NCBI GenBank assembly: GCA_002269645.1
Contig: NIVC01000012.1
Location: 1,240,001-1,304,000 of the forward strand
From: Macrostomum lignano
Lineage: Eukaryota
DNA length: 64,000 bases
Reading direction: 5' to 3'
Shown: positions 1 to 48,082 of the stretch, in pieces
Numbering within the stretch: the stretch's first letter is position 1
Layout: each line of letters begins with the position of its first letter
Notes under the pieces: generated by a model
Seen by the model: only the letters and a program-made list of their open reading frames with translations
Databases searched by the model: none
Told to the model about the DNA's origin: nothing
Position numbers and translations under genes: made by a program

Positions 1-3000
1 TACTTGGATGTACTTGATTGTGACGACAACGCGATAGCGACGACTGCCGCCGCACTTGGTCACGTGGTCTTTGTCGCCCTTGCACTTGATTTTCTTGCAC
101 GGAACGGCCGAGCGCTTCACCTTCTTGATGCAGTGCTGCGTGCAACGAGGCGGCAGAGACATCGTGCACTTCACACGCGACGTGTAGAAGATGTGCGTCG
201 TGACGCTCTTCGCCCTGCCAGGCTTGCACTCTTTGCGGATGATCTTGGCTTTCGGACAAGTTCTCGGAGCTGCAATCAAGGCGAAAGCGAATAATCACTT
301 AGCATAGTTACGAATAATCTACATAGTTTACGGATTCGGCTTCTCTTAACATGCGCCAATGGCGTTGCAAGTCACGCCTGGGGCACAAAGGTGCAAAAGG
401 TATTAATATACTCGTTTTTCACGAGTGCATTTACTTACGGCACCGGATCTTCTTGATGACCTTCCGGCTCTTGGGAACGCATTTCTTTCCGTTCCACCGG
501 TAGGTGACTCGAGTAAACACGCGATAGGCCCTGTGCTTCTTGCAGTGACGGATGAGAGTCCTGCTCGAGCAGTCCTTCCTGCAAATCTTCTTTGCAGAAA
601 TCTTGCGCTTCTTCACGCAGATTATCTTGCACACCCGTTTTCCTCCTGACTTTGATTTTGATTTTCCCATGTCTGAAGTTGTAAATTGTAAATTACAAGT
701 TATTAAGCATCAGACCAGCATCTAGCATGTGTCCGTTCTCCTACCTGTGCACACTTCCCGAACGACGCTGCTGACGATGGAATCAAGCTTGTTAAAGTTT
801 CCGGCTCGCCAGAATCTTCCTTTGCTTGAGATGCCCTTTAGTTCAGCCCTGCAGCAGTAGATTTCGAAAGCAAGCATGCTTCGCTTATAATGTCTTATTT
901 GAATCAGGTAACCTATGTTCTGTAATACAGTTTAAGAAATGTATTCTTACGGATTAATCTTGTCGGTCACGCTTGGGTCGGGGTTGTAGATTCCGACAGA
1001 GACAAAGCGGGCGCCCTTCTTCTTCAAGACTTTAGCCGAGGCGACGGGGTCACCCATCGTGCTCTTCCGTCAGTGATGACCACGACAATGAACGGGACTC
1101 CAGCTCGTCTCTTCGGGTAGATGTCACTGTTGACAAGGTCGATAGCCGCATAAGTCATTGTGATTCCCTCGTCTCGTGGAAGCTTCGACATGGCGGCCAG
1201 AACCTGCGACTTGGTTTTGTACTTGTCCAAGTTGAACACGAGTTTCGGTCTGGTCGAATAAGTGACAACAGCAACGCGAACGCCAGTCGGAGATACGCCC
1301 ATCCTGCGAACGATGTGCTGAACAAAGCGAGATTCTTTGGCAAAATCGGCGTCGTGAATGCTGGTCGAAGAGTCCAGAACGAACACGAGGTCGGCAACCT
1401 TGCTGCAGGTGCGACTTGGCGGAACAACCAGACCGGTGCAAACCTTCTTCTTCTTGTAGTAATACGTAGTGGTGTAGGAGTACTTGTGCCCAGCCGAGCA
1501 TCGCGTGTGCACCTTTCGTGGCTTCCTGCAGCGATGTGGCGGCTTCGGACACAACACGCGAGAGTGGATCAGCTTGCGGATGCAGTGCAGTGTGCAGATA
1601 CGGCCGCTGCACCTCTTCTTAACGGTGGAAGTCGCGATCGTGAGAGTCCGGTACTTCCTGCCCTTGCCGCACGAAGTTCGCTTGATGGTCTTCGACCCCT
1701 TCGGGCAAACCACTGGGCATGGATAGTGCTTGACGGTCCTGTGCTTCCTGCATTTCTTTCCGACTCGTGTATTCCAGGTAGTGATGACGGATCGGTAGCG
1801 CCTCTTACCTCCGCACTTGGTAAGCTTGACCTTCTTGGCCTCGTCGCACACGATGTGAAAGCACGGGACACCAGACTTGGTCACTCGCTTTGTGCACACC
1901 TGTCGGCATACGATCGGCTTCTTCTTGCTGCACACAATCTTACCAGAGTAGAAAATCGTAGTGGTGACCTTGTGCTTGGCTCCCTTCGTGCAGTTGCTGG
2001 TAGTCGTCCTCGACTTCGGGCACCGTCGGGGTGCTGAAATTATAAGTTATGAGTAAGGTCATATCATTTTTTGTTTTCGAAAAGTTAGTGCTGGCTGCGA
2101 AAGTACTAAAGTGGTTGTTACTAATTTTCTTAGCTCTTCATGCTGGTAGAAAAGTAATCAGTAAAGATCGTTTGTACAACAATAACGACAGCAGCAACAA
2201 AACACACCTCTCGCTGGCCACGAGTAAAGAACGTTCGTACACTTTATTGAAAGCTGTATTGGCGCCATTGAGACGTCAGATAGAAGCATTTTGGTTTGTA
2301 GTACGTTTCTAATATCAAGCCTAATTATTAAACGATTTTGCCCTTGTTGTCTACAGACGTTACCCTGCATTTCAAGGTAGCTAGGCTTAAAAGATCAGAA
2401 GCTAAGGCATAAACATAATTTCATTTATTAATCATATTTACTATACTATCAAAGTCCACTCTGTCGTGCATTCCTTGCCTTGTTTTAACCTAAGCTCGAA
2501 ACCGAAATTTTCAGTTATTAATTTTCAGATACTCTCGAAAACTTCTGCAATAAGTTGGATTTCCTTGAAAAGAAATTTTCTGAAACTTAATTAACTATTC
2601 TATTATTTTTCGTCACATACAGATGGGTCTTATGTTAAACAAAGTTTTGCGTTCGTCAATAGAGTTTTTTATAGTGCTCAATCGAAAACTATTGTTTCAT
2701 CTCATTACTTTGAATCTTCTGGATTCAAGAATCGAAAACAAAATACAAGGGCTGAAAGAACAAGAAACCCATCACCCTGAAAACATGTCTCAGGTACAAT
2801 ACTTAGAAGTTACAGATTTAGTGAAAGTGCTTAAATAAATCAAACAGCAATTGAATGAACAATTGCATTTCTTACAGTTTGAAATAACAAATAGTTTGCA
2901 AAAACAAGAGACTAAACTTACGGCATGGGAGTCTCTTCTTCGTGATACGCTTCAGCGGTACACAGCGTCCGCGAATTCGCTTGTAGTAAACCTCGATCAA

Positions 3001-6000
3001 GTACTTGTAGGCGGAGTGCTTCTTGCAGCGCTTGAGCACGGCCTTAACTTTACACGGAGTAGGGACTGGTGGGCAAGGCTTTTTCTTGCTAACCATGTGT
3101 CTGACGCACTTTGCGGTGCACTTGCCCTTGTGAACGCACGAGCGACGAACAGTGTAGCTGATGATGGACTTGACCTCGAACAAGCTGTGCGACTTGCCCT
3201 TGGAGCAGGGTTTACGGATGACCTGAGTCTTCGGGCACTTGATCGGACACGGATAGCGCTTGGTGGTCTTGTGCTTCTTGCAGATGCCTTTTACTTCGGT
3301 GTACTTGATGGTGACGACAACACGATAGCGACGACTGCCGCCGCACTTTGTCACGTGGTCCTTGTCCTTCTTGCACTTGATTTTCTTGCACGGAACAGCC
3401 GAGCGCTTCACCTTCTTGATGCAGTGCTGCGTGCAACGAGGCCGCTTCGACTTTGTACACCTGACATGCGACGTGTAGAAGATGTGCGTCGTGACTCGCT
3501 TGACGACTCCCGGCTTGCACTTTGTGCGGATTGTCTTGGCCTTCGGACAGCGTCTTGGTGCTGCATTGTGTTTACATTTTGATCAAAGAATGAGATATCA
3601 TTTAGGGAAACTAGAACACTTACTTAAGAGCGTACTTAAAAAGCATGATTATCAATACTTACGACAAGGCTGCTTCTTGACGATCCTTGTGCGGTGTTTG
3701 CGGCACTTTCCGTCGACCAGCCTGTAGCTGATTTGCAGGAACAGTCGGTAAGCCGCGTGCTTAGTGCACTTCTTCACAATCATTGCCGGATCGCAATGGA
3801 TTTTGATGATCTTGCACTTTTTCTTAGTGACAGTCTGCTTCCTAATGCACTTGCCGCCGCGATCGATAAACACCACCTTGGTAAGCTTCCTGTAGCCCTT
3901 GCGGCACTTCTTGTCCAGGAGCAGCAGAGGCTTCCTGTTGCACTTGCACTTAATGATGGACACCTGGACTTTCTTCTTGTGACACACCCAGCCGGTTTTG
4001 TACTTGCGCGACTCGTAGAAGTTCAGGAAGGTCTGCGTGCGTCCAGCCTTGCACTTGCTGCCGACCGTCGTCTTGTGGTAGTGAATCTGGTGGGACGAGC
4101 AGCCAGAGCAGCGGACGCGACGCACGGATTTTCGTCGCCAGACACAGCGTCCGTGGACCCGAGTGCGGTACTTCGTTGTGATGGTTCGGAAGTTGTGCAC
4201 ACACTTGGTGGTGTGGTAGGATAGCTGGTATCGGCACTTGCGCTTCTTGCACGGCTTCCTGGCTGACCGCTTGTGCTTCTTCACGCACACAATCTTGCAG
4301 CGGCGCGCTTTTCCAGACTTCAAAGCACCTGAGAAACAGTTGTGCATTCGTTTAAAGTAAGGTATGCTTGTAAACCATTGCGAACTAAAATAATTGGTTG
4401 CTAAACGTTTTAGGCATTGGGACTTACGGTGACACACTCGCTTCTTCACGTAGTAATAGGTGATGATGTACGAGTGTGAGTTCTTCTTCGAGCATCGGAC
4501 GTGCACCTTGCGCGGCTTCCTGCAGCGATGTGGCGGCTTCGGACACAACACGCGAGAGTGGATCAGCTTGCGGATGCAGTGCAGTGTGCAGATACGGCCG
4601 CTGCACCTCTTCTTAACGGTGGAAGTCGCGATCGTGAGAGTCCGGTACTTCCTGCCCTTGCCGCACGAAGTTCGCTTGATGGTCTTGGACCTCTTCGGGC
4701 AAACCACTGGGCACGGATAGTGCTTGACGGTCCTGTGCTTCCTGCACTTCTTTCCGACTCGTGTATTCCAGGTAGTGATGACGGATCGGTAGCGCCTCTT
4801 ACCGCCGCACTTGGTAAGCTTGACCTTCTTGGCCTCGTCGCACACGATGTGAAAGCACGGGACACCAGACTTGGTCACTCGCTTTGTGCACACCTGTCGG
4901 CATACGATCGGCTTCTTCTTGCTGCACACAATCTTACCAGAGTAGAAAATCGTAGTGGTGACCTTGTGCCTGACTCCCTTTGTGCACTTCGTTTTGGTTA
5001 CTCTCGTCTTCGGGCACTTGCGAGGTGCTAAAATATTAATTCAATAAGCAGATATAAACCCTGGTTTTGAAACTTCTATTTTGACGAGTAGATTAGCTAC
5101 CCTTGCTACTTGTCAAGGAACGAGCTACTTACGGCAAAGAAGTCGGGCAATTGTCTCTCGCTTGTAGATGACACAAGTTCCGCGAACATTCCTGTAGAGC
5201 GCCTTGATCTGGTACTTGTATGCAGAGTGTTTGCGACACTTGGTCCAGAAGGGCGGAGGCTGCTTGCAGCGACGATCTGGCGGACGCGTTTTGCACCGCT
5301 TTCGCGATCGCAGAACTCGTCTGACGCACTTCACTGTGCACTTGCCCTTGTGAACGCACGCGCGACGAACGGTGTAGCTGATGATGGACTTCACAGAGAA
5401 CTTGCGACCCTTTTTGCAAGGCCTTATGATGGTCTGAGTCTTTGGGCACTTGACCGGACACGGATAGCGCTTGGTGGTCTTGCGCCTCTTGCAGACGCCT
5501 TTTACTTGGATGTACTTGATTGTGACGACAACGCGATAGCGACGACTGCCGCCGCACTTGGTCACGTGGTCTTTGTCGCCCTTGCACTTGATTTTCTTGC
5601 ACGGAACGGCCGAGCGCTTCACCTTCTTGATGCAGTGCTGCGTGCAACGAGGCGGCAGAGACATCGTGCACTTCACACGCGACGTGTAGAAGATGTGCGT
5701 CGTGACGCTCTTCGCCCTGCCAGGCTTGCACTCTTTGCGGATGATCTTGGCTTTCGGACAAGTTCTCGGAGCTGCAATCAAGGCGAAAGCGAATAATCAC
5801 TTAGCATAGTTACGAATAATCTACATAGTTACGGATTCGGCTTCTCTTAACATGCGCCAATGGCGTTGCAAGTCACGCCTGGGGGCACAAAGGTGCAAAA
5901 GGTATTAATATACTCGTTTTTCACGAGTGCATTTACTTACGGCACCGGATCTTCTTGATGACCTTCCGGCTCTTGGGAACGCATTTCTTTCCGTTCCACC

Positions 6001-9000
6001 GGTAGGTGACTCGAGTAAACACGCGATAGGCCCTGTGCTTCTTGCAGTGACGGATGAGAGTCCTGCTCGAGCAGTCCTTCCTGCAAATCTTCTTTGCAGA
6101 AATCTTGCGCTTCTTCACGCAGATTATCTTGCACACCCGTTTTCCTCCTGACTTTGATTTTGATTTTCCCATGTCTGAAGTTGTAAATTGTAAATTACAA
6201 GTTATTAAGCATCAGACCAGCATCTAGCATGTGTCCGTTCTCCTACCTGTGCACACTTCCCGAACGACGCTGCTGACGATGGAATCAAGCTTGTTAAAGT
6301 TTCCGGCTCGCCAGAATCTTCCTTTGCTTGAGATGCCCTTTAGTTCAGCCCTGCAGCAGTAGATTTCGAAAGCAAGCATGCTTCGCTTATAATGTCTTAT
6401 TTGAATCAGGTAACCTATGTTCTGTAATACAGTTTAAGAAATGTATTCTTACGGATTAATCTTGTCGGTCACGCTTGGGTCGGGGTTGTAGATTCCGACA
6501 GAGACAAAGCGGGCGCCCTTCTTCTTCAAGACTTTAGCCGAGGCGACGGGGTCACCCATCGTGCTCTTCCGTCAGTGATGACCACGACAATGAACGGGAC
6601 TCCAGCTCGTCTCTTCGGGTAGATGTCACTGTTGACAAGGTCGATAGCCGCATAAGTCATTGTGATTCCCTCGTCTCGTGGAAGCTTCGACATGGCGGCC
6701 AGAACCTGCGACTTGGTTTTGTACTTGTCCAAGTTGAACACGAGTTTCGGTCTGGTCGAATAAGTGACAACAGCAACGCGAACGCCAGTCGGAGATACGC
6801 CCATCCTGCGAACGATGTGCTGAACAAAGCGAGATTCTTTGGCAAAATCGGCGTCGTGAATGCTGGTCGAAGAGTCCAGAACGAACACGAGGTCGGCAAC
6901 CTTGCTGCAGGTGCGACTTGGCGGAACAACCAGACCGGTGCAAACCTTCTTCTTCTTGTAGTAATACGTAGTGGTGTAGGAGTACTTGTGCCCAGCCGAG
7001 CATCGCGTGTGCACCTTTCGTGGCTTCCTGCAGCGATGTGGCGGCTTCGGACACAACACGCGAGAGTGGATCAGCTTGCGGATGCAGTGCAGTGTGCAGA
7101 TACGGCCGCTGCACCTCTTCTTAACGGTGGAAGTCGCGATCGTGAGAGTCCGGTACTTCCTGCCCTTGCCGCACGAAGTTCGCTTGATGGTCTTCGACCC
7201 CTTCGGGCAAACCACTGGGCATGGATAGTGCTTGACGGTCCTGTGCTTCCTGCATTTCTTTCCGACTCGTGTATTCCAGGTAGTGATGACGGATCGGTAG
7301 CGCCTCTTACCTCCGCACTTGGTAAGCTTGACCTTCTTGGCCTCGTCGCACACGATGTGAAAGCACGGGACACCAGACTTGGTCACTCGCTTTGTGCACA
7401 CCTGTCGGCATACGATCGGCTTCTTCTTGCTGCACACAATCTTACCAGAGTAGAAAATCGTAGTGGTGACCTTGTGCTTGGCTCCCTTCGTGCAGTTGCT
7501 GGTAGTCGTCCTCGACTTCGGGCACCGTCGGGGTGCTGAAATTATAAGTTATGAGTAAGGTCATATCATTTTTTGTTTTCGAAAAGTTAGTGCTGGCTGC
7601 GAAAGTACTAAAGTGGTTGTTACTAATTTTCTTAGCTCTTCATGCTGGTAGAAAAGTAATCAGTAAAGATCGTTTGTACAACAATAACGACAGCAGCAAC
7701 AAAACACACCTCTCGCTGGCCACGAGTAAAGAACGTTCGTACACTTTATTGAAAGCTGTATTGGCGCCATTGAGACGTCAGATAGAAGCATTTTGGTTTG
7801 TAGTACGTTTCTAATATCAAGCCTAATTATTAAACGATTTTGCCCTTGTTGTCTACAGACGTTACCCTGCATTTCAAGGTAGCTAGGCTTAAAAGATCAG
7901 AAGCTAAGGCATAAACATAATTTCATTTATTAATCATATTTACTATACTATCAAAGTCCACTCTGTCGTGCATTCCTTGCCTTGTTTTAACCTAAGCTCG
8001 AAACCGAAATTTTCAGTTATTAATTTTCAGATACTCTCGAAAACTTCTGCAATAAGTTGGATTTCCTTGAAAAGAAATTTTCTGAAACTTAATTAACTAT
8101 TCTATTATTTTTCGTCACATACAGATGGGTCTTATGTTAAACAAAGTTTTGCGTTCGTCAATAGAGTTTTTTATAGTGCTCAATCGAAAACTATTGTTTC
8201 ATCTCATTACTTTGAATCTTCTGGATTCAAGAATCGAAAACAAAATACAAGGGCTGAAAGAACAAGAAACCCATCACCCTGAAAACATGTCTCAGGTACA
8301 ATACTTAGAAGTTACAGATTTAGTGAAAGTGCTTAAATAAATCAAACAGCAATTGAATGAACAATTGCATTTCTTACAGTTTGAAATAACAAATAGTTTG
8401 CAAAAACAAGAGACTAAACTTACGGCATGGGAGTCTCTTCTTCGTGATACGCTTCAGCGGTACACAGCGTCCGCGAATTCGCTTGTAGTAAACCTCGATC
8501 AAGTACTTGTAGGCGGAGTGCTTCTTGCAGCGCTTGAGCACGGCCTTAACTTTACACGGAGTAGGGACTGGTGGGCAAGGCTTTTTCTTGCTAACCATGT
8601 GTCTGACGCACTTTGCGGTGCACTTGCCCTTGTGAACGCACGAGCGACGAACAGTGTAGCTGATGATGGACTTGACCTCGAACAAGCTGTGCGACTTGCC
8701 CTTGGAGCAGGGTTTACGGATGACCTGAGTCTTCGGGCACTTGATCGGACACGGATAGCGCTTGGTGGTCTTGTGCTTCTTGCAGATGCCTTTTACTTCG
8801 GTGTACTTGATGGTGACGACAACACGATAGCGACGACTGCCGCCGCACTTTGTCACGTGGTCCTTGTCCTTCTTGCACTTGATTTTCTTGCACGGAACAG
8901 CCGAGCGCTTCACCTTCTTGATGCAGTGCTGCGTGCAACGAGGCCGCTTCGACTTTGTACACCTGACATGCGACGTGTAGAAGATGTGCGTCGTGACTCG

Positions 9001-12000
9001 CTTGACGACTCCCGGCTTGCACTTTGTGCGGATTGTCTTGGCCTTCGGACAGCGTCTTGGTGCTGCATTGTGTTTACATTTTGATCAAAGAATGAGATAT
9101 CATTTAGGGAAACTAGAACACTTACTTAAGAGCGTACTTAAAAAGCATGATTATCAATACTTACGACAAGGCTGCTTCTTGACGATCCTTGTGCGGTGTT
9201 TGCGGCACTTTCCGTCGACCAGCCTGTAGCTGATTTGCAGGAACAGTCGGTAAGCCGCGTGCTTAGTGCACTTCTTCACAATCATTGCCGGATCGCAATG
9301 GATTTTGATGATCTTGCACTTTTTCTTAGTGACAGTCTGCTTCCTAATGCACTTGCCGCCGCGATCGATAAACACCACCTTGGTAAGCTTCCTGTAGCCC
9401 TTGCGGCACTTCTTGTCCAGGAGCAGCAGAGGCTTCCTGTTGCACTTGCACTTAATGATGGACACCTGGACTTTCTTCTTGTGACACACCCAGCCGGTTT
9501 TGTACTTGCGCGACTCGTAGAAGTTCAGGAAGGTCTGCGTGCGTCCAGCCTTGCACTTGCTGCCGACCGTCGTCTTGTGGTAGTGAATCTGGTGGGACGA
9601 GCAGCCAGAGCAGCGGACGCGACGCACGGATTTTCGTCGCCAGACACAGCGTCCGTGGACCCGAGTGCGGTACTTCGTTGTGATGGTTCGGAAGTTGTGC
9701 ACACACTTGGTGGTGTGGTAGGATAGCTGGTATCGGCACTTGCGCTTCTTGCACGGCTTCCTGGCTGACCGCTTGTGCTTCTTCACGCACACAATCTTGC
9801 AGCGGCGCGCTTTTCCAGACTTCAAAGCACCTGAGAAACAGTTGTGCATTCGTTTAAAGTAAGGTATGCTTGTAAACCATTGCGAACTAAAATAATTGGT
9901 TGCTAAACGTTTTAGGCATTGGGACTTACGGTGACACACTCGCTTCTTCACGTAGTAATAGGTGATGATGTACGAGTGTGAGTTCTTCTTCGAGCATCGG
10001 ACGTGCACCTTGCGCGGCTTCCTGCAGCGATGTGGCGGCTTCGGACACAACATGCGAGAGTGGATCAGCTTGCGGATGCAGTGCAGTGTGCAGATACGGC
10101 CGCTGCACCTCTTCTTAACGGTGGAAGTCGCGATCGTGAGAGTCCGGTACTTCCTGCCCTTGCCGCACGAAGTTCGCTTGATGGTCTTGGACCTCTTCGG
10201 GCAAACCACTGGGCACGGATAGTGCTTGACGGTCCTGTGCTTCCTGCACTTCTTTCCGACTCGTGTATTCCAGGTAGTGATGACGGATCGGTAGCGCCTC
10301 TTACCGCCGCACTTGGTAAGCTGACCTTCTTGGCCTCGTCGCACACGATGTGAAAGCACGGGACACCAGACTTGGTCACTCGCTTTGTGCACACCTGTCG
10401 GCATACGATCGGCTTCTTCTTGCTGCACACAATCTTACCAGAGTAGAAAATCGTAGTGGTGACCTTGTGCCTGACTCCCTTTGTGCACTTCGTTTTGGTT
10501 ACTCTCGTCTTCGGGCACTTGCGAGGTGCTAAAATATTAATTCAATAAGCAGATATAAACCCTGGTTTTGAAACTTCTATTTTGACGAGTAGATTAGCTA
10601 CCCTTGCTACTTGTCAAGGAACGAGCTACTTACGGCAAAGAAGTCGGGCAATTGTCTCTCGCTTGTAGATGACACAAGTTCCGCGAACATTCCTGTAGAG
10701 CGCCTTGATCTGGTACTTGTATGCAGAGTGTTTGCGACACTTGGTCCAGAAGGGCGGAGGCTGCTTGCAGCGACGATCTGGCGGACGCGTTTTGCACCGC
10801 TTTCGCGATCGCAGAACTCGTCTGACGCACTTCACTGTGCACTTGCCCTTGTGAACGCACGCGCGACGAACGGTGTAGCTGATGATGGACTTCACAGAGA
10901 ACTTGCGACCCTTTTTGCAAGGCCTTATGATGGTCTGAGTCTTTGGGCACTTGACCGGACACGGATAGCGCTTGGTGGTCTTGCGCCTCTTGCAGACGCC
11001 TTTTACTTGGATGTACTTGATTGTGACGACAACGCGATAGCGACGACTGCCGCCGCACTTGGTCACGTGGTCTTTGTCGCCCTTGCACTTGATTTTCTTG
11101 CACGGAACGGCCGAGCGCTTCACCTTCTTGATGCAGTGCTGCGTGCAACGAGGCGGCAGAGACATCGTGCACTTCACACGCGACGTGTAGAAGATGTGCG
11201 TCGTGACGCTCTTCGCCCTGCCAGGCTTGCACTCTTTGCGGATGATCTTGGCTTTCGGACAAGTTCTCGGAGCTGCAATCAAGGCGAAAGCGAATAATCA
11301 CTTAGCATAGTTACGAATAATCTAATATTTGGATTCGGCTTCTCTTAACATGCGCCAATGGCGTTGCAAGTCACGCCTGGGGCACAAAGGTGCAAAAGGT
11401 ATTAATATACTCGTTTTTCACGAGTGCATTTACTTACGGCACCGGATCTTCTTGATGACCTTCCGGCTCTTGGGAACGCATTTCTTTCCGTTCCACCGGT
11501 AGGTGACTCGAGTAAACACGCGATAGGCCCTGTGCTTCTTGCAGTGACGGATGAGAGTCCTGCTCGAGCAGTCCTTCCTGCAAATCTTCTTTGCAGAAAT
11601 CTTGCGCTTCTTCACGCAGATTGTTTTGCAATGCGCTTTACCTTTTGATGATTTGCCTTGAACGAAGTAATTGTGTTTTTTAGGTTTTTTGTCGTAAAAA
11701 TAGTAAATTGTCTAGTAAAGCTTTAATCATATTAAAACATTAAAAAAATTTTTTACCTAGACACAAATGCTTTCGCTGGTAGTAATAGGTGATGATGTAG
11801 GAGTACATGTGTCCGGCTGAGCATCGAACGCGCACTTTGCGTGGCCTCCTGCAGCGATGTGGCGGCTTTGGACACAGCACACGAGAGTGGATCAGCTTGC
11901 GGATGCAGTGCAGTGTGCAGATACGGCCGCTGCACCTCTTCTTAACGGTGGAAGTCGCGATCGTGAGAGTCCGGTACTTCCTGCCCTTGCCGCACGAAGT

Positions 12001-15000
12001 TCGCTTGATGGTCTTCGACCCCTTTGGGCAAACCACTGGGCATGGATAGTGCTTGACGGTCCTGTGCTTCCTGCACTTCTTTCCGACTCGTGTATTCCAG
12101 GTAGTGATGACGGATCGGTAGCGCCTCTTACCGCCGCACTTGGTAACACTGACCTTCTTGGCCTCGTCGCACACGATGTGAACGCAAGGAACAGCAGACT
12201 TGGTCACTCGCTTGATGCAATGCTGGTGACAAACTTTCGGACTTCTTTTGTGGCAGATGATCTTGCCAATGTAGAAAACTTTGGTTGTGACTTTGTGCTT
12301 TGCTCCCTTTGTACAGTTGCTGGTAGTCGTCCTCGACTTCGGGCACCGTCGGGGTGCTGAAATTAGAAATTTTTAACATAAGCGATATGCTGATTTATTT
12401 GATTAGAATGCTGTTGTTATCGAACTAATTTCTTGTGTTGTTTGCACGTACTACTGTAGAATGTGAATTTTGCAGGCACGTGTAATATTCCTTGTGTCCT
12501 GCTGAGAGAAACTGTACGAAAAACAGGAAAATTTTACTTTTTGTTGCATTGACATATTAAGCATTTATGGGGCTTCTTTACAAGGTCGAAAATGCAATAA
12601 CTGACCTTTCAAAACAATGTGTGTAGGGCTTTCGTCAGGGTAAATATCGATGCAATGAAATTTTGACGGTGTGATGGAGATTTGACTTAAGATTGTTGTT
12701 ACAAACTTTGATATGTAGCTTCCATTTATAACAGTTGTGCCAAATGATTGGCCGAAACGATTCTAACTGTTTAAAATACTTTTCCGAAATTTCACATCAG
12801 CTACTCTTTCTTTAACTGAGTCTACTGCTTAAGAAAAAGCTTCGTTCCTAATGTCATAATCCGAAGTTTCTCAACCAGTGGCAAATAAAGAGCTAAAAGT
12901 GCGCTTCCGTCGACCAGTATAAACTTTTAATCAGAGTTTTTACAGCAAGACAAATAGAGTGAACCAGTTTGTCTGAAACAATAATTTAAACAACTTCACC
13001 ATTTCTTAGGAGTGGTTGCTACTGAAAATTTCAACATAGGCTTGACAGCTAGTGCCTGAAAAAGCTGATTCCCCCAGAGAACCTAAAAAGCTTCGAATTA
13101 AACAAGTTTTTTAGGCTTTTTGTTTTAAAAAGTAAGTTTTTATCAGAAGCGCCACAATCGCACAGGAATAAGAGCAAAAAATTCTCTTACTGCACAAACC
13201 ATTTAAAATAAAGCGATCGAGCTACGATGCACCGGCAAAGTAAAATCCCAGGTCTGTGAAATCTCCAGTGGAATCCCCAGTGGAATCCCCTTGAATGGAA
13301 TCCCTTCCCTTAGTCAAATTTCTCAGGGGAATCTCCTCAGTAGAATCCCACTTGGTGGAAATCCAAAGAGTCGAATTTTAAGCAGTGAAATCCCAACCAT
13401 TAAAAGAGCATTCAGCATCCCTACTCAACAATGTATAAGTAAGTAATATGCACTTGGTAATGAAATCCCATAGAGCAACTCAGCATCATTCCCGCTCAGC
13501 ATCATTCCCGCTCACCATCATTCCCGCTCACCATCATTCCCGCTCAGCATCATTCCCGCTCACCATCATTCCCGCTCACCATCATTCCCGCTCACCATCA
13601 TTCCCGCTCACCATCATTCCCGCTCACCATCATTCCCGCTCACCATCATTCCCGCTCACCATCATTCCCGCTCACCATCATTCCCGCTCAGCATCATTCG
13701 AGCTCAGCATAATTTACTCTATTCCCCTCAGCACAATTCCCTGATCATTCATATCATACTGCACATGAGCATCTCACAGTCCCGCTCACTATCATCAATT
13801 GATGCAAACTAGTTTAGCATTAACGAAGCGTTCTTAAGGCAGGTGCATTAGTAAACTCGTAAAAAACAAATTAATGACGCAATAAAAAAGAAATTAAATT
13901 TCTAGGATCAGCGCATAATGGTACCTCCCCGCCTTTTCACTGGCGTTCAATAATTTTTCAGTGATTATCCGCTACGAGGTGGTCTCGAACCATCAATGGC
14001 TCTCTTAGCCTAAATTCTTAAAAAGGTTTCCCTCCCGTGTACAAAGGAACTGCTATTTACACTCAATGATGGTCAACACTCCCACTGAGCCTAGCTAGCA
14101 AAGGCAGAGTGATGATGCGATCTCGATTGGAATAGTAATTTAGCCAGTCAATGTTTTAGTATATCAAGTCGCAAACCAGTCGGTCAGAGGACCAGAGCAC
14201 GTACAATTGATCACATAAGCATTGTACACAGCCAGTCAGTCAGAAGGTGTAAGCTATAGATGCCTATAAGAAAAAGAAAATCCCATCACCACCTCACTGC
14301 CAGTGTGAAAAAAGAAAATTAATTAAAACCTTCAGTTCTGACTCTGATGCAACCTAAGAAGATGCTAGCTTTTCTGCAGTCACAGCCGATCAACTATAAT
14401 CCGACCTTGCAAAAAAGCAATTTTTCTTCCCGTAAAGCAAACGTTTTTTAAAATTTTATAACACGACGAAAATAACTCTTTAACGCTCAATCAGACACCA
14501 GCATAAGTCCAGACACCGTAAAATCCATCCAGCTATTTTAAAGCATTGAACTTCCACCTGACTAACTGACAACCGCAGGTTTAGTTATATAGACAGTAGA
14601 TACAAGTAACTTACGGCATGGGATTCTCTTCTTCGTGATACGCTTCAGCGGTACACAGCGTCCGCGAATTCGCTTGTAGTAAACCTCGATCAAGTACTTG
14701 TAGGCGGAGTGCTTCTTGCAGCGCTTGAGCACGGCCTTAACTTTACACGGAGTAGGGACTGGTGGGCAAGGCTTTTTCTTGCTAACCATGTGTCTGACGC
14801 ACTTTGCGGTGCACTTGCCCTTGTGAACGCACGAGCGACGAACAGTGTAGCTGATGATGGACTTGACCTCGAACAAGCTGTGCGACTTGCCCTTGGAGCA
14901 GGGTTTACGGATGACCTGAGTCTTCGGGCACTTGATCGGACACGGATAGCGCTTGGTGGTCTTGTGCTTCTTGCAGATGCCTTTTACTTCGGTGTACTTG

Positions 15001-18000
15001 ATGGTGACGACAACACGATAGCGACGACTGCCGCCGCACTTTGTCACGTGGTCCTTGTCCTTCTTGCACTTGATTTTCTTGCACGGAACAGCCGAGCGCT
15101 TCACCTTCTTGATGCAGTGCTGCGTGCAACGAGGCCGCTTCGACTTTGTACACCTGACATGCGACGTATAGAAGATGTGCGTCGTGACTCGCTTGACGAC
15201 TCCCGGCTTGCACTTTGTGCGGATCGTCTTGGCCTTCGGACAGCGTCTTGGTGCTGCATTGTGTTTACATTTTGATCAAAGAATGAGATATCATTTAGGG
15301 AAACTAGAACACTTACTTAAGAGCGTACTTAAAAAGCATGATTATCAATACTTACGACAAGGCTGCTTCTTGACGATCCTTGTGCGGTGTTTGCGGCACT
15401 TTCCGTCGACCAGCATGTAGCTGATTTGCAGGAACAGTCGGTAAGCCGCGTGCTTAGTGCACTTCTTCACAATCATTGCCGGATCGCAATGGATTTTGAT
15501 GATCTTGCACTTTTTCTTAGTGACAGTCTGCTTCCTAATGCACTTGCCGCCGCGATCGATAAACACCACCTTGGTAAGCTTCCTGTAGCCCTTGCGGCAC
15601 TTCTTGTCCAGGAGCAGCAGAGGCTTCCTGTTGCACTTGCACTTAATGATGGACACCTGGACTTTCTTCTTGTGACACACCCAGCCGGTTTTGTACTTGC
15701 GCGACTCGTAGAAGTTCAGGAAGGTCTGCGTGCGTCCAGCCTTGCACTTGCTGCCGACCGTCGTCTTGTGGTAGTGAATCTGGTGGGACGAGCAGCCAGA
15801 GCAGCGGACGCGACGCACGGATTTTCGTCGCCAGACACAGCGTCCGTGGACCCGAGTGCGGTACTTCGTTGTGATGGTTCGGAAGTTGTGCACACACTTG
15901 GTGGTGTGGTAGGATAGCTGGTATCGGCACTTGCGCTTCTTGCACGGCTTCCTGGCTGACCGCTTGTGCTTCTTCACGCACACAATCTTGCAGCGGCGCG
16001 CTTTTCCAGACTTCAAAGCACCTGAGAAACAGTTGTGCATTCGTTTAAAGTAAGGTATGCTTGTAAACCATTGCGAACTAAAATAATTGGTTGCTAAACG
16101 TTTTAGGCATTGGGACTTACGGTGACACACTCGCTTCTTCACGTAGTAATAGGTGATGATGTACGAGTGTGAGTTCTTCTTCGAGCATCGGACGTGCACC
16201 TTGCGCGGCTTCCTGCAGCGATGTGGCGGCTTCGGACACAACACGCGAGAGTGGATCAGCTTGCGGATGCAGTGCAGTGTGCAGATACGGCCGCTGCACC
16301 TCTTCTTAACGGTGGAAGTCGCGATCGTGAGAGTCCGGTACTTCCTGCCCTTGCCGCACGAAGTTCGCTTGATGGTCTTGGACCTCTTCGGGCAAACCAC
16401 TGGGCACGGATAGTGCTTGACGGTCCTGTGCTTCCTGCACTTCTTTCCGACTCGTGTATTCCAGGTAGTGATGACGGATCGGTAGCGCCTCTTACCGCCG
16501 CACTTGGTAAGCTTGACCTTCTTGGCCTCGTCGCACACGATGTGAAAGCACGGGACACCAGACTTGGTCACTCGCTTTGTGCACACCTGTCGGCATACGA
16601 TCGGCTTCTTCTTGCTGCACACAATCTTACCAGAGTAGAAAATCGTAGTGGTGACCTTGTGCCTGACTCCCTTTGTGCACTTCGTTTTGGTTACTCTCGT
16701 CTTCGGGCACTTGCGAGGTGCTAAAATATTAATTCAATAAGCAGATATAAACCCTGGTTTTGAAACTTCTATTTTGACTAGTAGATTAGCTACCCTTGCT
16801 ACTTGTCAAGGAACGAGCTACTTACGGCAAAGAAGTCGGGCAATTGTCTCTCGCTTGTAGATGACACAAGTTCCGCGAACATTCCTGTAGAGCGCCTTGA
16901 TCTGGTACTTGTATGCAGAGTGTTTGCGACACTTGGTCCAGAAGGGCGGAGGCTGCTTGCAGCGACGATCTGGCGGACGCGTTTTGCACCGCTTTCGCGA
17001 TCGCAGAACTCGTCTGACGCACTTCACTGTGCACTTGCCCTTGTGAACGCACGCGCGACGAACGGTGTAGCTGATGATGGACTTCACAGAGAACTTGCGA
17101 CCCTTTTTGCAAGGCCTTATGATGGTCTGAGTCTTTGGGCACTTGACCGGACACGGATAGCGCTTGGTGGTCTTGCGCCTCTTGCAGACGCCTTTTACTT
17201 GGATGTACTTGATTGTGACGACAACGCGATAGCGACGACTGCCGCCGCACTTGGTCACGTGGTCTTTGTCGCCCTTGCACTTGATTTTCTTGCACGGAAC
17301 GGCCGAGCGCTTCACCTTCTTGATGCAGTGCTGCGTGCAACGAGGCGGCAGAGACATCGTGCACTTCACACGCGACGTGTAGAAGATGTGCGTCGTGACG
17401 CTCTTCGCCCTGCCAGGCTTGCACTCTTTGCGGATGATCTTGGCTTTCGGACAAGTTCTCGGAGCTGCAATCAAGGCGAAAGCGAATAATCACTTAGCAT
17501 AGTTACGAATAATCTACATAGTTACGGATTCGGCTTCTCTTAACATGCGCCAATGGCGTTGCAAGTCACGCCTGGGGGCACAAAGGTGCAAAAGGTATTA
17601 ATATACTCGTTTTTCACGAGTGCATTTACTTACGGCACCGGATCTTCTTGATGACCTTCCGGCTCTTGGGAACGCATTTCTTTCCGTTCCACCGGTAGGT
17701 GACTCGAGTAAACACGCGATAGGCCCTGTGCTTCTTGCAGTGACGGATGAGAGTCCTGCTCGAGCAGTCCTTCCTGCAAATCTTCTTTGCAGAAATCTTG
17801 CGCTTCTTCACGCAGATTATCTTGCACACCCGTTTTCCTCCTGACTTTGATTTTGATTTTCCCATGTCTGAAGTTGTAAATTGTAAATTACAAGTTATTA
17901 AGCATCAGACCAGCATCTAGCATGTGTCCGTTCTCCTACCTGTGCACACTTCCCGAACGACGCTGCTGACGATGGAATCAAGCTTGTTAAAGTTTCCGGC

Positions 18001-21000
18001 TCGCCAGAATCTTCCTTTGCTTGAGATGCCCTTTAGTTCAGCCCTGCAGCAGTAGATTTCGAAAGCAAGCATGCTTCGCTTATAATGTCTTATTTGAATC
18101 AGGTAACCTATGTTCTGTAATACAGTTTAAGAAATGTATTCTTACGGATTAATCTTGTCGGTCACGCTTGGGTCGGGGTTGTAGATTCCGACAGAGACAA
18201 AGCGGGCGCCCTTCTTCTTCAAGACTTTAGCCGAGGCGACGGGGTCACCCATCGTGCTCTTGCCGTCAGTGATGACCACGACAATGAACGGGACTCCAGC
18301 TCGTCTCTTCGGGTAGATGTCACTGTTGACAAGGTCGATAGCCGCATAAGTCATTGTGATTCCCTCGTCTCGTGGAAGCTTCGACATGGCGGCCAGAACC
18401 TGCGACTTGGTTTTGTACTTGTCCAAGTTGAACACGAGTTTCGGTCTGGTCGAATAAGTGACAACAGCAACGCGAACGCCAGTCGGAGATACGCCCATCC
18501 TGCGAACGATGTGCTGAACAAAGCGAGATTCTTTGGCAAAATCGGCGTCGTGAATGCTGGTCGAAGAGTCCAGAACGAACACGAGGTCGGCAACCTTGCT
18601 GCAGGTGCGACTTGGCGGAACAACCAGACCGGTGCAACCCTTCTTCTTCTTGTAGTAATACGTAGTGGTGTAGGAGTACTTGTGCCCAGCCGAGCATCGC
18701 GTGTGGACTTTGCGCGGGGGTTTGCAGCCGTGTTTTTCCTTGCCACACTTGACTTTCTTTATCAAAGTCTTGTGAGGCACACATTTACTTCCTTTGACCG
18801 TGAAGTGAATTCGGATGGTTCTTCTATATCCTCGAATGCACGGTGTTGTTTTCGTCGTATCCTTTTTGCAAGACTTGCCTAAAATATTTAAACGGATTTG
18901 TATTAGTTGTTTGCCTGTTTTTGAGAAAAAGCTGTATATTCTAATAACAGTTTCATTCATGTTTTTAAATTAAATTTCTTACAATTTCGCTTTCGGATAA
19001 CCACTCGAGTTTTGTGGCACCGCCTGGATTCCTCGCCCTGATAGACGGTAACGAAGCTGGTAATGAAGCCGCTTTTGCAGGCTTTTCCCGTGGTTACATG
19101 CTGGTAGCTACGTTGCTTAGTGGTGCATCCACCACAGGGGATCAGTCGAACTAATTTTCCATGAACTCGAACGCATGGACCGGCAGGTTGCAGTCTTGTT
19201 AAGTACGTCCAATACACGCCGCGATAACGGCTTCCTTTACGGAGACATTGGGTCTCGATTTGGATCCTGGCCTTTCTTGGACAACGTTTTTTCAAAACGC
19301 ATCGCCGTTTAGTAACATGCAGTCTCTGGTAGCTGCATCTGCCTTTGTGTGAGGCGTAGAAACTAGAGTAGATCGCTTTACTACCTCCAGTGCACTTGCG
19401 CCCAACAGTTATGTGAAAGATTCGAATCTGGTGCTTGGAGCAGCCACTGCACGGAACTTTTCGAATGACCTTGATGCGAACTCGCTTGCAACTGCCGCGG
19501 GTTGTACTGTAGAATCCCCAGAAGATTCTACGAAAGCCTGATTTTCCGCAACGTTTTTCTATCATAAGCCGGCGCTTGACGCATCGAACTGCAATGTGTG
19601 GGAAAGATGCAATTCTGAAAGTGGCATAATATTGATATTAAATTTGATCATTTAGCCTAGTTAAACGACATTCTTACTCTTTCGACAGGGCTGCTTCCTT
19701 CGGACTAGCCGCTTGCTGCATCGCCAGACGCACTTTTTGTGGCTGCAATCGTGAATCTTGGAGGTGTGCACTCGCGTAACAACGCGTAGGCGCGTTTTAG
19801 GGTTGCATTTTCCAATGTGAACCTTTGTGCCTTCTTTGCAGACTGGAGCTGTAGGTGTAATATGGAAGTAATCGATAGAAGCATATTTTAGTTTTATACA
19901 GTACTATAATAAGCCTTTTAAATCAAATTTCACGCCAATTTAGTTCAACGGATCACTTACGATTGGTGCAACGAACTTTGTGCACCTGCTTGAATGGCAT
20001 ACAGGTGTTGCGAACCATCTTGTAGAACTTGACAATGCGCTTCTTATAGCCAGCAACGCATTTGCTAACCAGCACTCGGCGATACTTTGGACAGCGAATC
20101 TTCAGAGCGCCATGGACAGCTGGCTGGGCTACAAAGCTGATGCGCATGCGAAGTACGTACTTGTATGCGTACTTAAGCTTGATCCAGGTGCGAATATGAA
20201 TGTATACGGTGCTGATAACCTGCAGGGACGCATCATTAACATCAGCCCCAACACCGATCACCAGGATTGAAACGCTCATCTCCTGCAGTCTGTTGCTCTC
20301 TACTTCCACGCTGCGGCCGTAGTTAGAATCTCCCGAAGTGATGACGATGAGCATTTTGGCACTCTGCTCAGCTGAATCGGTTAGAACCTGTTCCCGAACT
20401 AATAAGAGGGCATCGCCTATGGCTCGGTGCTTGCCAGTCATCAGCTTGAGGCCCTTAATAGCGGTGATGACGCTTGATTGGCTGTGGTACTCAGTCAGAC
20501 GGAAAGCCAGGCTGGCACGGCTAGAGAACAGGACAACGGAGACGCGGACGCTCTTGGCGCCGATCTTCATCTTCTGAATCATAGAGATAATGAATTGCTT
20601 CTCGTAGCCAAAGTGCAACTCGCCAAGATCTTGCGAGGCCTGCATCACCAGAATGAGTTCCATAGCCTGGCTGGCGAAGCACTGGCTTTTCTCGCAGCCG
20701 CACGACTTCCTTTTAATAACTTTAGTAATCGGGTTGCATTTGTTGAGCGTTTTGACAAAGCCAATTTCCATGGTTTTGCGGAAGCCGTGCTTGCAGGGAG
20801 TCTTGTACCGAACCGGCTTGGGACACTTCAATACGCTGCTCATGGTCATTTTCACTGAAATTGTTTAGGTTTAGTAAGTCTGTTATTAGCATGCAATTCA
20901 CTGCCTGTGAGCCGCGATGGATCTATACAGGGAGCGGAGATTAATTTCTCCCCCGGAGATAAACTCGAACTAAATATTCAGATTTTATAATGCGCTGTTA

Positions 21001-23794
21001 ACAAATAAAGAATTCCGTTGTCCATGGTAGCGGAGATAAGCTACTGATAATCTCCGTACGTTTTAACACTAGGGAAAAGACAAAGCGAACAGGCAGAGTG
21101 TACTACATTAGAATAATACACTTTAACTCGGAGATACTCTATGTTTTGGAGTTTATGCCTAGGGTATCTTCTTGTTTCAGTGTATTATTATATATTTATA
21201 AAAGATACTGCTATGCCTACGGGCAATTGGAATGGTACCAAACATTACATAAGCCTTAGACAGATTGTTTAGATTTTGTATAAATAATGTATAAAACATC
21301 TCCCGTTTATTCATTTTTCTATGGCCGTCAGAATGACTTAGAAATTATTAACTTCGAGAGTTAAGTTCGAAGTTGTTTTGACCATAGAAAAATGAATTAA
21401 CGGGAGATATAGAAGTATTTGCTTTGACCATAGAAAAATGAATGAACGGGAGATATAGAAGTATTGTCCCCACTTGGCTCGGTCTTTCTGATCGACATAA
21501 GAAGCAGAAAACAATTTTAATCAGTTTAGGTGAATGGCTTGTACACGAAGTATAAAATTTGTAAACATGACTGACAGCATTAGTCTATGGTTAATTGTCT
21601 ATGGTTCTGATCGTTTTTATGGTCATATAGATCCTTTTTTTCGCCCGGGACAAATAAATTTTTCAACACAACACCACAGACTTATTTGACCGGGGCGATT
21701 GGGGAATAAGCGCCGTTTAATTCACATTCTATGGTTAAAAAGTCCAAGACTGTATTTAACGGTCTCGAGGCGATCGAAGCGAGCAGAGGACTATTGAGTG
21801 TGGCCGATTACTTTTTAACCATAAACTATGATTATTAATATTATATATGAAATTCGATTGCAATTTTACAATGCTAAAAATCTACTATGTTTGTTTGTGG
21901 CCAGTCCGTAGTCTATGGTAAAAGTATTTCACTTTCAATCGGAGGAGAATTCAATCGTCTAATGGTAAATTAAGTCTATGGTTTCAGAATTTTTGCCACT
22001 TGGATTTTTAAATATTGGATTATTATTTAATTCTGAAATCATAGACATAAGCGCATTATCGTATACACGATCAATTTCGGTTGATCATTCTATATGATAA
22101 TGCTATACTGATAGCTTTAAACGGTTTAATTCTCCTCAAAAGTGGGGACTTATTTTCGTCAACGACGGATTCCCGGCTTAGAATAATAGAATTGAATATC
22201 CATTCAGACTCAGCAGCAGACAAGAGTGTCCCCCCTTCTTCGCAAGAATTTCGAGCGTTTCTCAGTTGAGTGGCAAGACTCTGGGCCATAGACATTTATT
22301 CTGACACAGGACTCAATGCGCATCTCTCAATCTACAGGATTTGAGATAGACAGTTTGATGAAAACGAATGAAGACAGGAAATTAGAACAGTGGAAATTTT
22401 AATTTAATAACGCGTGTATCCTTGAACACCTTTGTCTTTTGCTGAGTATAAGCAATCGTACTTTTTATCAATCTTTCAATGCCGAATGGTACGAATTTTT
22501 GGAAAGCTATTGATCTAGCCGCAAAATTCAACTTTTAAAATCGAATGTCAACTCACTCTTCCATCGGATGTGCATGTGGATGAAGGCGTCAACCACGAAC
22601 TGAAGACTGGAAAACTTGGGCACCCAGACGTACTTTCCAGCTGTAGCGCGGCTCTTCCAAAATGCCCTGTTCAAAATCAAGAGTATTTAACTGCACAAGT
22701 TGCTTGGTGGCTGCACTTTAGGAATGAAATTAATTTTCTGCGCTCGTAATCTGTTTAAATTTTCGCAGTTCAATAACACAATAGCAGCAGTAAAACGAGC
22801 AACTCACTGAGACACATCGTAGCCCACCATAACTGGCAGGAATGTGACACCCTTGGCCGTTAGGTAGCTAACTTGATTCGACACGCTGCGTCCAGAGTTC
22901 GAGTCTACGCTAGCGAGCACCACGATCAGTTTGCCGCTGAACCGGCGTCCTTTCCTGAGAATGCGCCGCCTGTAGAAGTACAGAGCCTCGCCTAGCGCCA
23001 CGTTCCCAGCCTTGCTGGCGTATCGAGTTCGCCTAATCTTGGAGATGATGCTCGACTTGGCTGATTCGAAACCGAACAGCAAGTGAGGCCGGGTGCCGGC
23101 CACGATCATGTTGACGCGGACTCGATAGCGGGCGACTCGCAGCCGGTTGACCAGATGGGCGGCGAACTTGCGCCAGCGCTGGAAGTGCTTGCCGTCCACC
23201 AAGAATGTGAAATCGATGGTCGAGGTGCCGACACAGATGCCTTTGCGGCAGCCGCCGCGTAAGCCGCGACCGGCAACCCGCTTTTTTGGCGACGAGTGGC
23301 CTGCGATGTTTGGGCAGGGCTGAATGCATACATTGAACTATTATGCGTAAACTAAACTAAAATAAGTCAATTTACTAAATTCTCTAGAAAGTTATTTGCT
23401 GATTTTTGCTTCGTTTTCTTAGAAACAATTTAACCTGATCATTTGCGGTGCGTAAAGATAGTTTTATTATAGAGTAAGTAATGTAACGCCAATATATCAT
23501 TCACTTGTCATTTGTTATCAGAGTCAAATCCATTGACATCCATATAGATAGATGCCAGAATTCAGTTCGTTTATAAAATCCACACAAAAAATTATACATG
23601 TTGAGCCACATAATGGCAGGACTAAGTCAGTTCTAGTATTTTAAGCAAGCACAATCCAATGAGGTTTTTTAGCCACTGTCGTTAGGCCTTCTATTGGCCA
23701 AATTGAGTTGACTGGCCACAGAGTTTGGGTGCCATGTGGGGGGGGGGTCGAGTACTCGTGGTCTCTGGCAACTGAGTAAGGGCTGGGTGGGGCT

Positions 23795-23870
<76 letters not shown>

Positions 23871-23871
23871 T

Positions 23872-23946
<75 letters not shown>

Positions 23947-29790: not shown

Positions 29791-30033
29791 CATGTATCGA
29801 CGAAGCCTTTCACTGGCTTTCAGTCATAAACAGCCCATTTGCTGTGCGAAATTATAGTTTTTTTTAAAAGCTTTCAAAAAATTTAGAAAGATTTTATTTC
29901 TTCTTTGCATTAGTGACCTATTTTACGAGTAGAAGGGAAACCTTTGAATATTTTCCGTGCACCTCTGCTTACAGCACGTAAGGAGATTCAATCATGACAA
30001 GACGCTGAGTTTTCGTACGAATCTGAGTAATAA

Positions 30034-32616: not shown

Positions 32617-33050
32617 GTGAGTGAATCTCAGAGATGACGTGAGTGAATCTCAGAGATGACGTGAGTGAATATCAGATGACTGTGAGTGAATCTCAGACGA
32701 CGTGAGTGAATCTCAGACGACCAGACGACATGAGTGAATCTCAGATGACTGTGAGTGAATCTCAGAGATGACGTGAGTGAATATCAGATGACTGTGAGTG
32801 AATCTCAGACGACGTGAGTGAATCTCAGACGACGTGAGTGAATCTCAGATGACTGTGAGTGAATCTCAGAGATGACGTGAGTGAATCTCAGAGATGACGT
32901 GAGTGAATATCAGACGACGTGAGTGAATCTCAGATGACCGTGAGTGAATCTCAGAGATGACGTGAGTGAATCTCAGACGACGTGAGTGAATCTCAGACGA
33001 CGTGAGTGAATTTCAGACGACGTGAGTTAATTTTCAGTGACGTTAGTGAA
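32617..33050. repeat. 20-22-bp minisatellite (gacgtgagtgaatctcaga[ga]t)n
   Basis: Direct reading, degenerating rightwards. Confidence 0.9.

Positions 33051-48030: not shown

Positions 48031-48082
<52 letters not shown>

Follow-up and report, generated by a model that had tools for sequence, protein, structure and literature searches.

A near-identical tandem array of seven-exon units within a VWA-domain gene of Macrostomum lignano

Introduction

When the exons and introns of a gene recur head to tail almost without a difference, does the sequence record a recent expansion of the gene, or only the difficulty of assembling a repeat? The question is raised by a stretch of 64,000 nt from the flatworm Macrostomum lignano, record positions 1,240,001–1,304,000 of contig NIVC01000012.1 in the same orientation (hereafter the window), in which an earlier note, made from the letters alone, had described a very recent multi-exon tandem duplication of 5.5 kb. 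The array lies on the minus strand within gene BOX15_Mlig000187g2 (Mlig000187.g2), the deposited product of which is PAA94323.1 (A0A267H7R9, "VWFA domain-containing protein"). Our analysis indicates that this is probably a real intragenic tandem array with a 7-exon unit, shaped by young unequal exchange or gene conversion and encoding a secreted cationic product, and that its small indels are mostly errors.

The contig is part of GCA_002269645.1 and belongs to NIVC01000000, the Mlig_3_7 assembly of M. lignano line DV1 (PMC5730564), which was built from PacBio continuous long reads (CLR) with Canu 1.4 and polished by Pilon with Illumina and RNA-seq reads (PMC5730564), and in which redundant blocks of ≥95% identity account for 180 Mb (PMC5730564). 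Repeat units were found by self-BLAST of the 64-kb window, and the copies were then compared base by base. The gene locus (L002) was fetched with its flanks, adding 8,977 bases left of the window, and was compared with a second locus (L003, 30 kb; contig NIVC01004963.1, gene g3, PAA46257.1) and with three independent protein models, P0001, P0015 and P0020. The deposited protein, P0016, was used for exact-match exon mapping.

Results

Extent of the array and differences between its copies

Self-BLAST revealed a period of 5502 bp, with units arranged head to tail and directly abutting. Positions 1–6133 matched 5503–11630 at 99.82% (4 mismatches, 6 gaps), 2915–7018 matched 14608–18711 at 99.78%, and 1–1516 matched 17196–18711 at 99.6%, all far beyond the repeats of less than about 20 nt that chance would give in 64 kb. 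To the left, the array reached 1,688 nt past the window start at 99.88% identity and then left the repeat inside the last Eb2 exon; the near-identical repeat totals about 17.4 kb. In the order of transcription, the segments within the window are as follows (exon names are explained in the next section).

14608–18711, minus strand: copy A, which comes first in the transcript and covers 2915–5502 and then 1–1516 of the unit; frame intact (self-BLAST and base comparison)
11631–14607, minus strand: diverged block replacing unit positions 632–2914; only one exon matches the unit
11004–11630, minus strand: partial unit, the final 631 nt of the unit in gene orientation, with the 3' part of Ee', an intron and the start of Ea_2 (self-BLAST and base comparison)
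5503–11003, minus strand: copy B, a full unit (copy 2 of the earlier note), 99.93% identical to copy C
1–5502, minus strand: copy C, a full unit (copy 1 of the earlier note), splice sites all AG/GT (self-BLAST)

Positions 1–5502 and 5503–11004 were 99.93% identical, the only differences being a substitution (4551C/10053T) and three indels of 1 bp (TTT/TT at 327, GGGG/GGGGG at 379 and TT/T at 4820/10321). This is the near-identity that the earlier note had reported, and its single substitution is real, only placed one base off at 10052. The third copy, which it had put at 14612–18705 with a handful of substitutions, spans 14608–18711 and carries 7 substitutions and one 1-bp indel relative to the other two, common to both. 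Relative to copy C, 7 sites differed in copy A, 1 in copy B and 2 in the copy designated D, and each of the four had at least one private substitution. Near-identity covered whole units (99.8–99.9%) and introns were as conserved as exons, in agreement with the claim that identity extends through AT-rich introns; the 7 introns of a unit, 72 to 888 nt long and 1537 nt in total, have 34.7% GC compared with 54.5% in the exons. The description was thus right to within a few bases as far as it went, having missed the minus strand, the partial copy at 11004–11630, the non-homologous stretch at 11631–14607, the 1,688-nt extension and the coding frameshifts described below.

The diverged block consists of a unique 2.26-kb intron, exon Ed' (12356–11757), a 100-nt intron and the start of Ee' (from 11656). 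Ed' encodes a Cys-rich module about 90% identical to Ed/Eb1 and lacks the VWA domain. The 2.26-kb intron contains a 16-bp minisatellite at 13479–13714 (CTCACCATCATTCCCG, 14.8 copies, 96% matches; Tandem Repeats Finder), and the remainder of it had no match elsewhere in the 64-kb window. The adjoining partial unit carries a private intron haplotype at about 11322–11330 that is also present in the duplicate locus g3.

Structure of the unit

One unit comprises 7 exons and 7 introns, with 3,966 nt of coding sequence (1,322 codons). The exon lengths are 639 nt for Ea, 600 for Eb1, 666 for Eb2, 639 for Ec, 1,084 for Ed, 104 for Ed2 and 234 for Ee, and their positions in the three main copies are listed here from high to low coordinates.

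Copy A, minus strand: Ed_4 18878–18146, Ed2 18043–17940, Ee 17867–17634, Ea 17464–16826, Eb1 16720–16121, Eb2 16021–15356, Ec 15253–14615
Copy B, minus strand: Ea 11272–10634, Eb1 10528–9930, Eb2 9830–9165, Ec 9062–8424, Ed 7535–6453, Ed2 6350–6247, Ee 6174–5941
Copy C, minus strand: Ea 5771–5133, Eb1 5027–4428, Eb2 4328–3663, Ec 3560–2922, Ed 2033–951, Ed2 848–745, Ee 672–439

The unit border is arbitrary and is crossed by the Ea of copy C (5771–5133), the next Ea beginning at 269; in Ed_4 (18878–18146) only the 3' part, from 18711 down, belongs to the repeat. AG/GT splice sites were found in all 24 exons of positions 1–18878. The Cys-rich exons start just past AG and end in TG(C/T) C immediately before GTAAG, that is, in phase 1-1, and a long open frame, E_b, holds a 99-nt in-frame intron. 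The VWA domain is coded by two exons, Ed ending in phase 2 after the residues DKINP and being followed by the 104-nt Ed2. Since the Cys-rich exons are of phase 1-1 and the coding length of the unit is a multiple of 3, gain or loss of a unit keeps the frame. P0001, P0015 and P0020 use exactly the predicted splice junctions, the published peptide FVSVGIYNPDPSVTDKINPAELK spans the predicted Ed/Ed2 junction, and in P0015 the frame is open through three units, each of exactly 1,322 aa, with a single residue differing among them.

Upstream of the array, the unique 5' part of the gene was mapped as follows.

18978–26085, minus strand: unique 5' part of the gene, exons approximate (exact-match mapping of P0016/PAA94323.1; Pfam VWA hits)
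26085–25981, minus strand: first exon, with Met at 26085 and a signal-peptide-like MPSTATKCSRAVLLLALCIAVAVAA
25356–25213, minus strand: unique 5' exon
23298–22807 and 22665–22558, minus strand: VWA 1 (Pfam)
20852–19962, minus strand: VWA 2 and a Cys-rich part (Pfam)
19846–19679, minus strand: unique 5' exon
19586–18983, minus strand: Cys-rich exon of the unique 5' part

The transcript runs from 7 unique exons through copy A, the diverged block (Ed', Ee') and units B and C to Ea, Eb1 and a terminal Eb2'. In this last exon the frame stays open through '...KKKCPPVKCFNKK...LPCRKYIL' and closes at a stop codon that lies about 1.86 kb to the left of position 1 of the window.

Frameshifts and the deposited gene model

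Base comparison located three 1-bp gaps in coding exons.

1066..1067, minus strand: gap in copy C within Ed, the VWA exon; the corresponding G is present at 18262
6568..6569, minus strand: Ed of copy B likewise lacks this G; copies B and C alone share the gap
10321..10322, minus strand: gap (TT>T) that shifts the frame in Eb1 of copy B and occurs in no other copy

The gap at 1066..1067 shifts the frame into a stop at 1029–1027, which is the end of PAA94323.1. This model (2,381 aa) has 'introns' that lead from one exon to the homologous point of a paralogous one (17274 to 15062, 12148 to 10320, 8788 to 5496 and 4501 to 1506), and the second of these jumps resumes exactly one base after the gap at 10321. 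Because its introns join homologous points of different repeat copies and it ends at a frameshift-made stop, PAA94323.1 is a collapsed, chimeric model with false introns. The repeat array thus accounts for the wrong deposited model, which hops between paralogous exons and ends at a stop that is probably an error, and also for the collapse of the de novo transcripts used in proteomics (1,540 and 1,207 aa). Once the three gaps are bridged, the conceptual protein of the contig is about 5,600 aa, as against the annotated 2,381 aa, and the translation of copy C with its 1-bp gap bridged was 100% identical to unit 1 of P0015.

The 1-bp gaps, including the three frameshifts, are probably residual consensus or assembly errors of the PacBio CLR data, and the same probably holds for most of the 'homopolymer-type indels' that the earlier note had listed as differences between copies, which would then not be biological. 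This is suggested by the CLR origin of the assembly, in which Pilon is weak where reads map to multiple places, by the excess of indels over substitutions between near-identical copies (e.g. 2 mismatches compared with 6 gaps), by a private 1-bp gap of the g3 contig in the same exon, and by the downstream units, which are otherwise free of stops and 99.9–100% identical to intact models.

If the frameshifts were instead real, g2 would be a decaying duplicate in a neopolyploid genome, translation would stop in copy B, and the downstream units would be dead exons whose duplication accompanied or followed the shared 1-bp deletion. The presence of the 1066/6568 gap in two adjacent copies and outside a homopolymer agrees with such decay, the deposited annotation does end at the resulting stop, and redundant genome copies could relax selection. 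Dead exons, however, sit poorly with downstream units that contain no other stops and retain 99.9–100% protein identity to intact models, with splice sites that are intact throughout, and with an indel excess typical of CLR error; moreover, intact versions of the unit type occur in P0015, P0020 and P0001. We consider both the decay of g2 and the duplication of its dead exons unlikely. Short-read assembly contigs contained no record of the frameshifted open reading frame (ORF), P0001 or P0015, an absence that is uninformative because the intact control ORF was missing as well.

The second locus and the age of the copies

Contig NIVC01004963.1 (g3) carries the same upstream neighbour gene (166 aa) and the 5' part of the same gene, and ends inside the array. 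Aligned with window positions 36000–14608, it showed 88–94% identity with many gaps in the intergenic region, 98.3–98.8% in the 5' part of the gene and 99.4–99.7% in the array. Counted as substitutions, the divergence of the g2 locus from g3 came to about 0.83% over the unique 5' region and about 0.34% over the array, as against 0.02–0.17% among copies within the g2 locus. Divergence within the locus is thus lower than that between loci, and the most recent duplication or homogenisation therefore postdates the separation of g2 and g3.

The loci and models also differed in arrangement. P0015 (4,765 aa) starts in Ed' with an exact match to the window and continues with three 1,322-aa units and then Ea-Eb1-Eb2'-stop, so that 3 units follow the diverged block in P0015 compared with 2 in NIVC01000012.1. 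In the g3 contig and P0020 the diverged block is absent after the first Ec, where a regular intron leads into a complete, VWA-coding Ed, and the g3 unit is closer to copies B and C of g2 than to its positional counterpart A. These differences in unit number and order lend indirect support to variation in copy number or length, which the earlier note had thought likely, or else reflect assembly uncertainty, as alleles, homeologues and assembly differences look alike at the level of contigs and models.

Exon Ed proved to be a mosaic. Its first 60 nt are Ed'-like (95%, compared with 70% to Eb1), the next 120 nt are Eb1-like (98–100%, compared with 68–75%), and a third part is a 300-nt tract 93–100% identical among three paralogous exons. 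We take this mosaic with its 300-nt tract as direct evidence of gene conversion. Older layers were visible as well. Ea and Ec have 85% nucleotide and 70% protein identity, and a short-read Logan contig from a presumably related flatworm (SRR31628392_1197333, L004; positions 141–1935) contains Ee-, Ea- and Eb1-like exons in the same order, with about 60–75% protein identity and the same exon borders.

Very young unequal crossing-over or ongoing concerted evolution, which the earlier note had inferred, is supported by the intron-wide identity, the in-frame unit, the low within-locus divergence and the conversion tract. We propose that misaligned homologous recombination between units (unequal crossing-over) would add or remove whole 1,322-aa blocks in frame, and that gene conversion between units would homogenise blocks without breaking the frame (concerted evolution). 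The last rounds of these exchanges are probably younger than the split of the g2 locus from the duplicate contig in the neopolyploid genome.

An old duplication would only look young if its near-identity, introns included, had been kept purely by ongoing gene conversion, in which case identity would be silent on age. Such a history could draw on the conversion tract and the mosaic exon, on copies that do not sort by locus (the g3 unit being nearer to B and C than to A) and on the order Ee-Ea-Eb1 already present in the related genome. Yet the differing unit count and order among loci and models would also require recent unequal exchange, and conversion alone leaves 5.5 kb of uninterrupted identity with sharp borders (18711, 14608 and 11630) unexplained; conversion as the sole cause therefore seems to us improbable.

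Reliability of the assembled copy number

A CLR assembly is not a reliable guide to the number of copies in a near-identical array of 17 kb, and the B/C pair or part of the array could be a false duplication or, conversely, the array could be collapsed, in which case it would exist with a wrong length. CLR reads of about 10 kb are short for a repeat of 17 kb, the neopolyploid genome is redundant, the assembler and polisher left the redundant blocks mentioned above, a single substitution separates B and C, another model has 3 units where the contig has 2, and the g3 contig ends inside the array. Against an error of this kind stand the private substitutions of all four copies (A to D), a kind of change that CLR consensus error seldom produces, the location of the array in the interior of a 1.72-Mb contig, and P0015, which independently requires at least 3.5 units. 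The private substitutions and the intron haplotype in common with g3 further indicate that the copies are distinct sequences, not one printed twice. We hold a wrong copy number to be a rather slim prospect. A transposable element or a non-genic segmental duplication was rejected, as the unit is 72% coding, has its borders in the exons and introns of one gene and is devoid of transposable-element features.

Composition and domains of the protein

The intact spliced part (1,205 aa) has an isoelectric point (pI) of 10.6, with 17.9% Lys, 11% Arg and 7.9% Cys. Each unit contains four exon-sized Lys/Arg/Cys-rich modules, one complete VWA domain and a short basic linker module, and the Cys-rich modules of 200–222 aa make up about 85% of it. 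Spliced Ed_4 and Ed2 matched positions 1–172 of 174 of the Pfam VWA family (E 2e-33, 116.5 bits, cutoff 23.8), and two further VWA domains were detected by Pfam in the unique 5' part. Read from the sequence, the residues DxSxS...T...D of the metal ion-dependent adhesion site (MIDAS) are present in the repeat-unit VWA (VLDSSTS, GITMTY and VVITDG), which accordingly has an intact MIDAS motif with putative metal binding. Its closest solved relatives are collagen VI alpha-3 (E 3.8e-91 summed), PTMP1 (1.7e-23) and the I domains of integrin alpha-1 and alpha-2.

The Cys-rich exons matched no Pfam family at E up to 1. An AlphaFold2 model of exon Ea consists of four long beta-hairpins (predicted local distance difference test 80, predicted template modelling score 0.30), and a Foldseek search of this model against PDB returned nothing better than E 0.08, all generic beta matches, so that no fold was assigned. 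A search with a Cys-rich exon alone was empty owing to a failure of word-index seeding, whereas a query that included VWA gave matches of 95–100%. A Cys-rich profile run against 1.84 billion representative proteins recovered only M. lignano models and one Logan exon from the relative; a Babylonia protein (E 6e-7) was regarded as spurious, being weak and compositionally different. On these searches the Cys-rich module appears to be restricted to Macrostomum.

The protein is expressed. More than 15 of its peptides are listed in the footprint (S2) and tail (S3) datasets of Wunderer et al. 2019 (PMC6410801), where they are assigned to RNA1509_167 (1,540 aa, pI 10.70, Pfam VWA) and RNA1509_2732 (PMC6410801). 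One of those in the footprint proteome, SAVPcVHIVcDEAK, is specific to Ed' (PMC6410801); the peptides found there are not assignable to the downstream copies specifically. In the searchable literature, the text of no paper mentioned RNA815_108, RNA1509_167, Mlig000187, A0A267H7R9 or PAA94323.

Discussion

Comparison with known systems

Multi-exon arrays of this kind are known from human genes, and the mechanism itself is well established. Kringle IV type 2 (KIV-2) of LPA is an intragenic multi-exon variable number tandem repeat whose unit of about 5.5 kb has 2 exons coding for 114 aa; its copies are near-identical through their introns, the unit is in frame so that copy number sets protein length, and the region is notoriously hard to assemble and annotate. 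The array of Mlig000187 resembles it as a head-to-tail block of exons and introns of about 5.5 kb, in frame, near-identical including introns and just as difficult for assembly and annotation, but has 7 exons and 1,322 aa per unit and only about 3–5 units, and belongs to an unrelated family and organism. It is also known here from assembled contigs and models, whereas LPA copy number varies in populations. The triplicate region of human nebulin (NEB) is a block of several exons repeated at >99% identity within a giant gene, in which unequal recombination gives rise to copy-number variants. Both genes are very large, repetitive and structural and share a multi-exon block with few repeats at >99% identity; nebulin, however, is intracellular and muscle-specific, whereas the Mlig000187 product would be secreted, cationic and Cys-rich and contains VWA domains. 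The array is thus of the LPA KIV-2 and nebulin-triplicate kind.

Within the same animal, the closest parallel is with Mlig-ap1 and Mlig-ap2 (PMC6410801), which are likewise giant secreted proteins with large internal repeats and a high content of Cys and/or Lys/Arg, lack database homologues and come from the same footprint and tail mass-spectrometry data (PMC6410801). Mlig-ap1 contains C-type lectin, vWD-C8-TIL and EGF domains and Cys-poor KR regions with pI >14 (PMC6410801), and Mlig-ap2 contains vWD, TIL, LDLa and TSP1 domains and repeats of 255 and 221 aa (PMC6410801). The Mlig000187 protein has VWA and the 200–222-aa Cys-rich modules, and none of their Pfam domains. Identity with either protein was rejected, as Pfam finds only VWA and the authors kept RNA1509_167 separate; KCGG and RRYR, which occur in every Mlig000187 unit, are absent from the ap1 and ap2 sequences as far as these are printed in the supplementary information (PMC6410801). 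The protein is therefore not a member of the flatworm adhesion-protein families and is similar to them only in style. The N-terminal VWA array of collagen VI alpha-3 and the mussel byssal PTMP1 (PDB 4cn8) are comparable as multi-VWA proteins of the extracellular matrix or holdfast, but VWA alone is held in common, and the Lys/Arg/Cys-rich modules have no counterpart in either.

Interpretation

Composition, domains and presence in footprints suggest that the protein functions as a matrix or adhesive component. It would be secreted, about 5,600 aa long, of pI about 10.6 and disulfide-rich, with several VWA domains, and would be deposited in worm footprints. There it may act as a polyvalent cationic component of matrix or mucus, or in an adhesive-cohesive role, with a valency that scales with unit number. 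A more far-reaching proposal is that Mlig000187 is an undescribed third structural component of the temporary adhesive or footprint of Macrostomum, a cationic, disulfide-rich protein of about 5,600 aa in which a genus-restricted beta-hairpin module, lacking known relatives in fold, alternates with MIDAS-bearing VWA, and whose length and valency are now changing in 1,322-aa steps between neopolyploid subgenomes or haplotypes; we offer it tentatively and regard it as doubtful.

Several observations weigh against a real, young array with a functional secreted product. The copy comparisons rest on assembled contigs and protein models, and Canu with Pilon may collapse, expand or homogenise a 17-kb array, which makes both the copy number and the extreme identity uncertain. 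The gap in the VWA exon is common to copies B and C and lies outside a homopolymer, as a real duplicated frameshift would. The portion of the proteome supplement searched yielded no copy-specific, terminal-exon or post-first-frameshift peptides, the footprint and tail preparations also contain many cellular proteins, which bears on function, and the searchable literature held no expression pattern, in situ hybridisation or knock-down for the gene.

As the mechanism is well known, the general interest of the locus is limited, and its main use lies in correcting the gene model: the protein actually made is likely to have about 5,600 aa or more. It also illustrates cleanly how a block of exons can be amplified in frame and undergo gene conversion in a flatworm that became polyploid recently, and flags an abundant, uncharacterised cationic VWA footprint protein as a candidate in bioadhesion.

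Other features of the window

Pfam matches identified four further coding features outside Mlig000187.g2.

44465–45040, minus strand: ankyrin-repeat ORF
55733–56605, plus strand: transmembrane exon of a ligand-gated ion channel (nAChR-like)
59369–59914, plus strand: sulfotransferase fragment
61025–61897, minus strand: complete single-exon GST_N_4/GST_C_6 gene (FAXC/metaxin-like)

A 21-bp minisatellite of about 79 copies (AGTGATGAGTGTTGGATAATC) at 30026–31673 exhibits a very strong GC skew (+0.6), and it is adjoined at 29046–29782 by a degraded retroelement-like ORF that had no Pfam match. At 38975–39330, far from the contig ends, about 30 copies of a 12-bp unit, TAAACCCTAACC, form an interstitial array of a variant CCCTAA telomere-type repeat. 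Micro- and minisatellites are unusually dense in the window, with (TAGA)n occurring twice alongside (TAAG)n, units of 12, 20, 47 and 23 bp and (TC)n.

23797–23943, 32615–33183, 40234–40733, 45525–45885, 46638–47287, 47945–48356, 49490–49791, 54456–54759 and 62702–63501: micro- and minisatellites

This density fits the published share of 15% simple and tandem repeats in the M. lignano genome.

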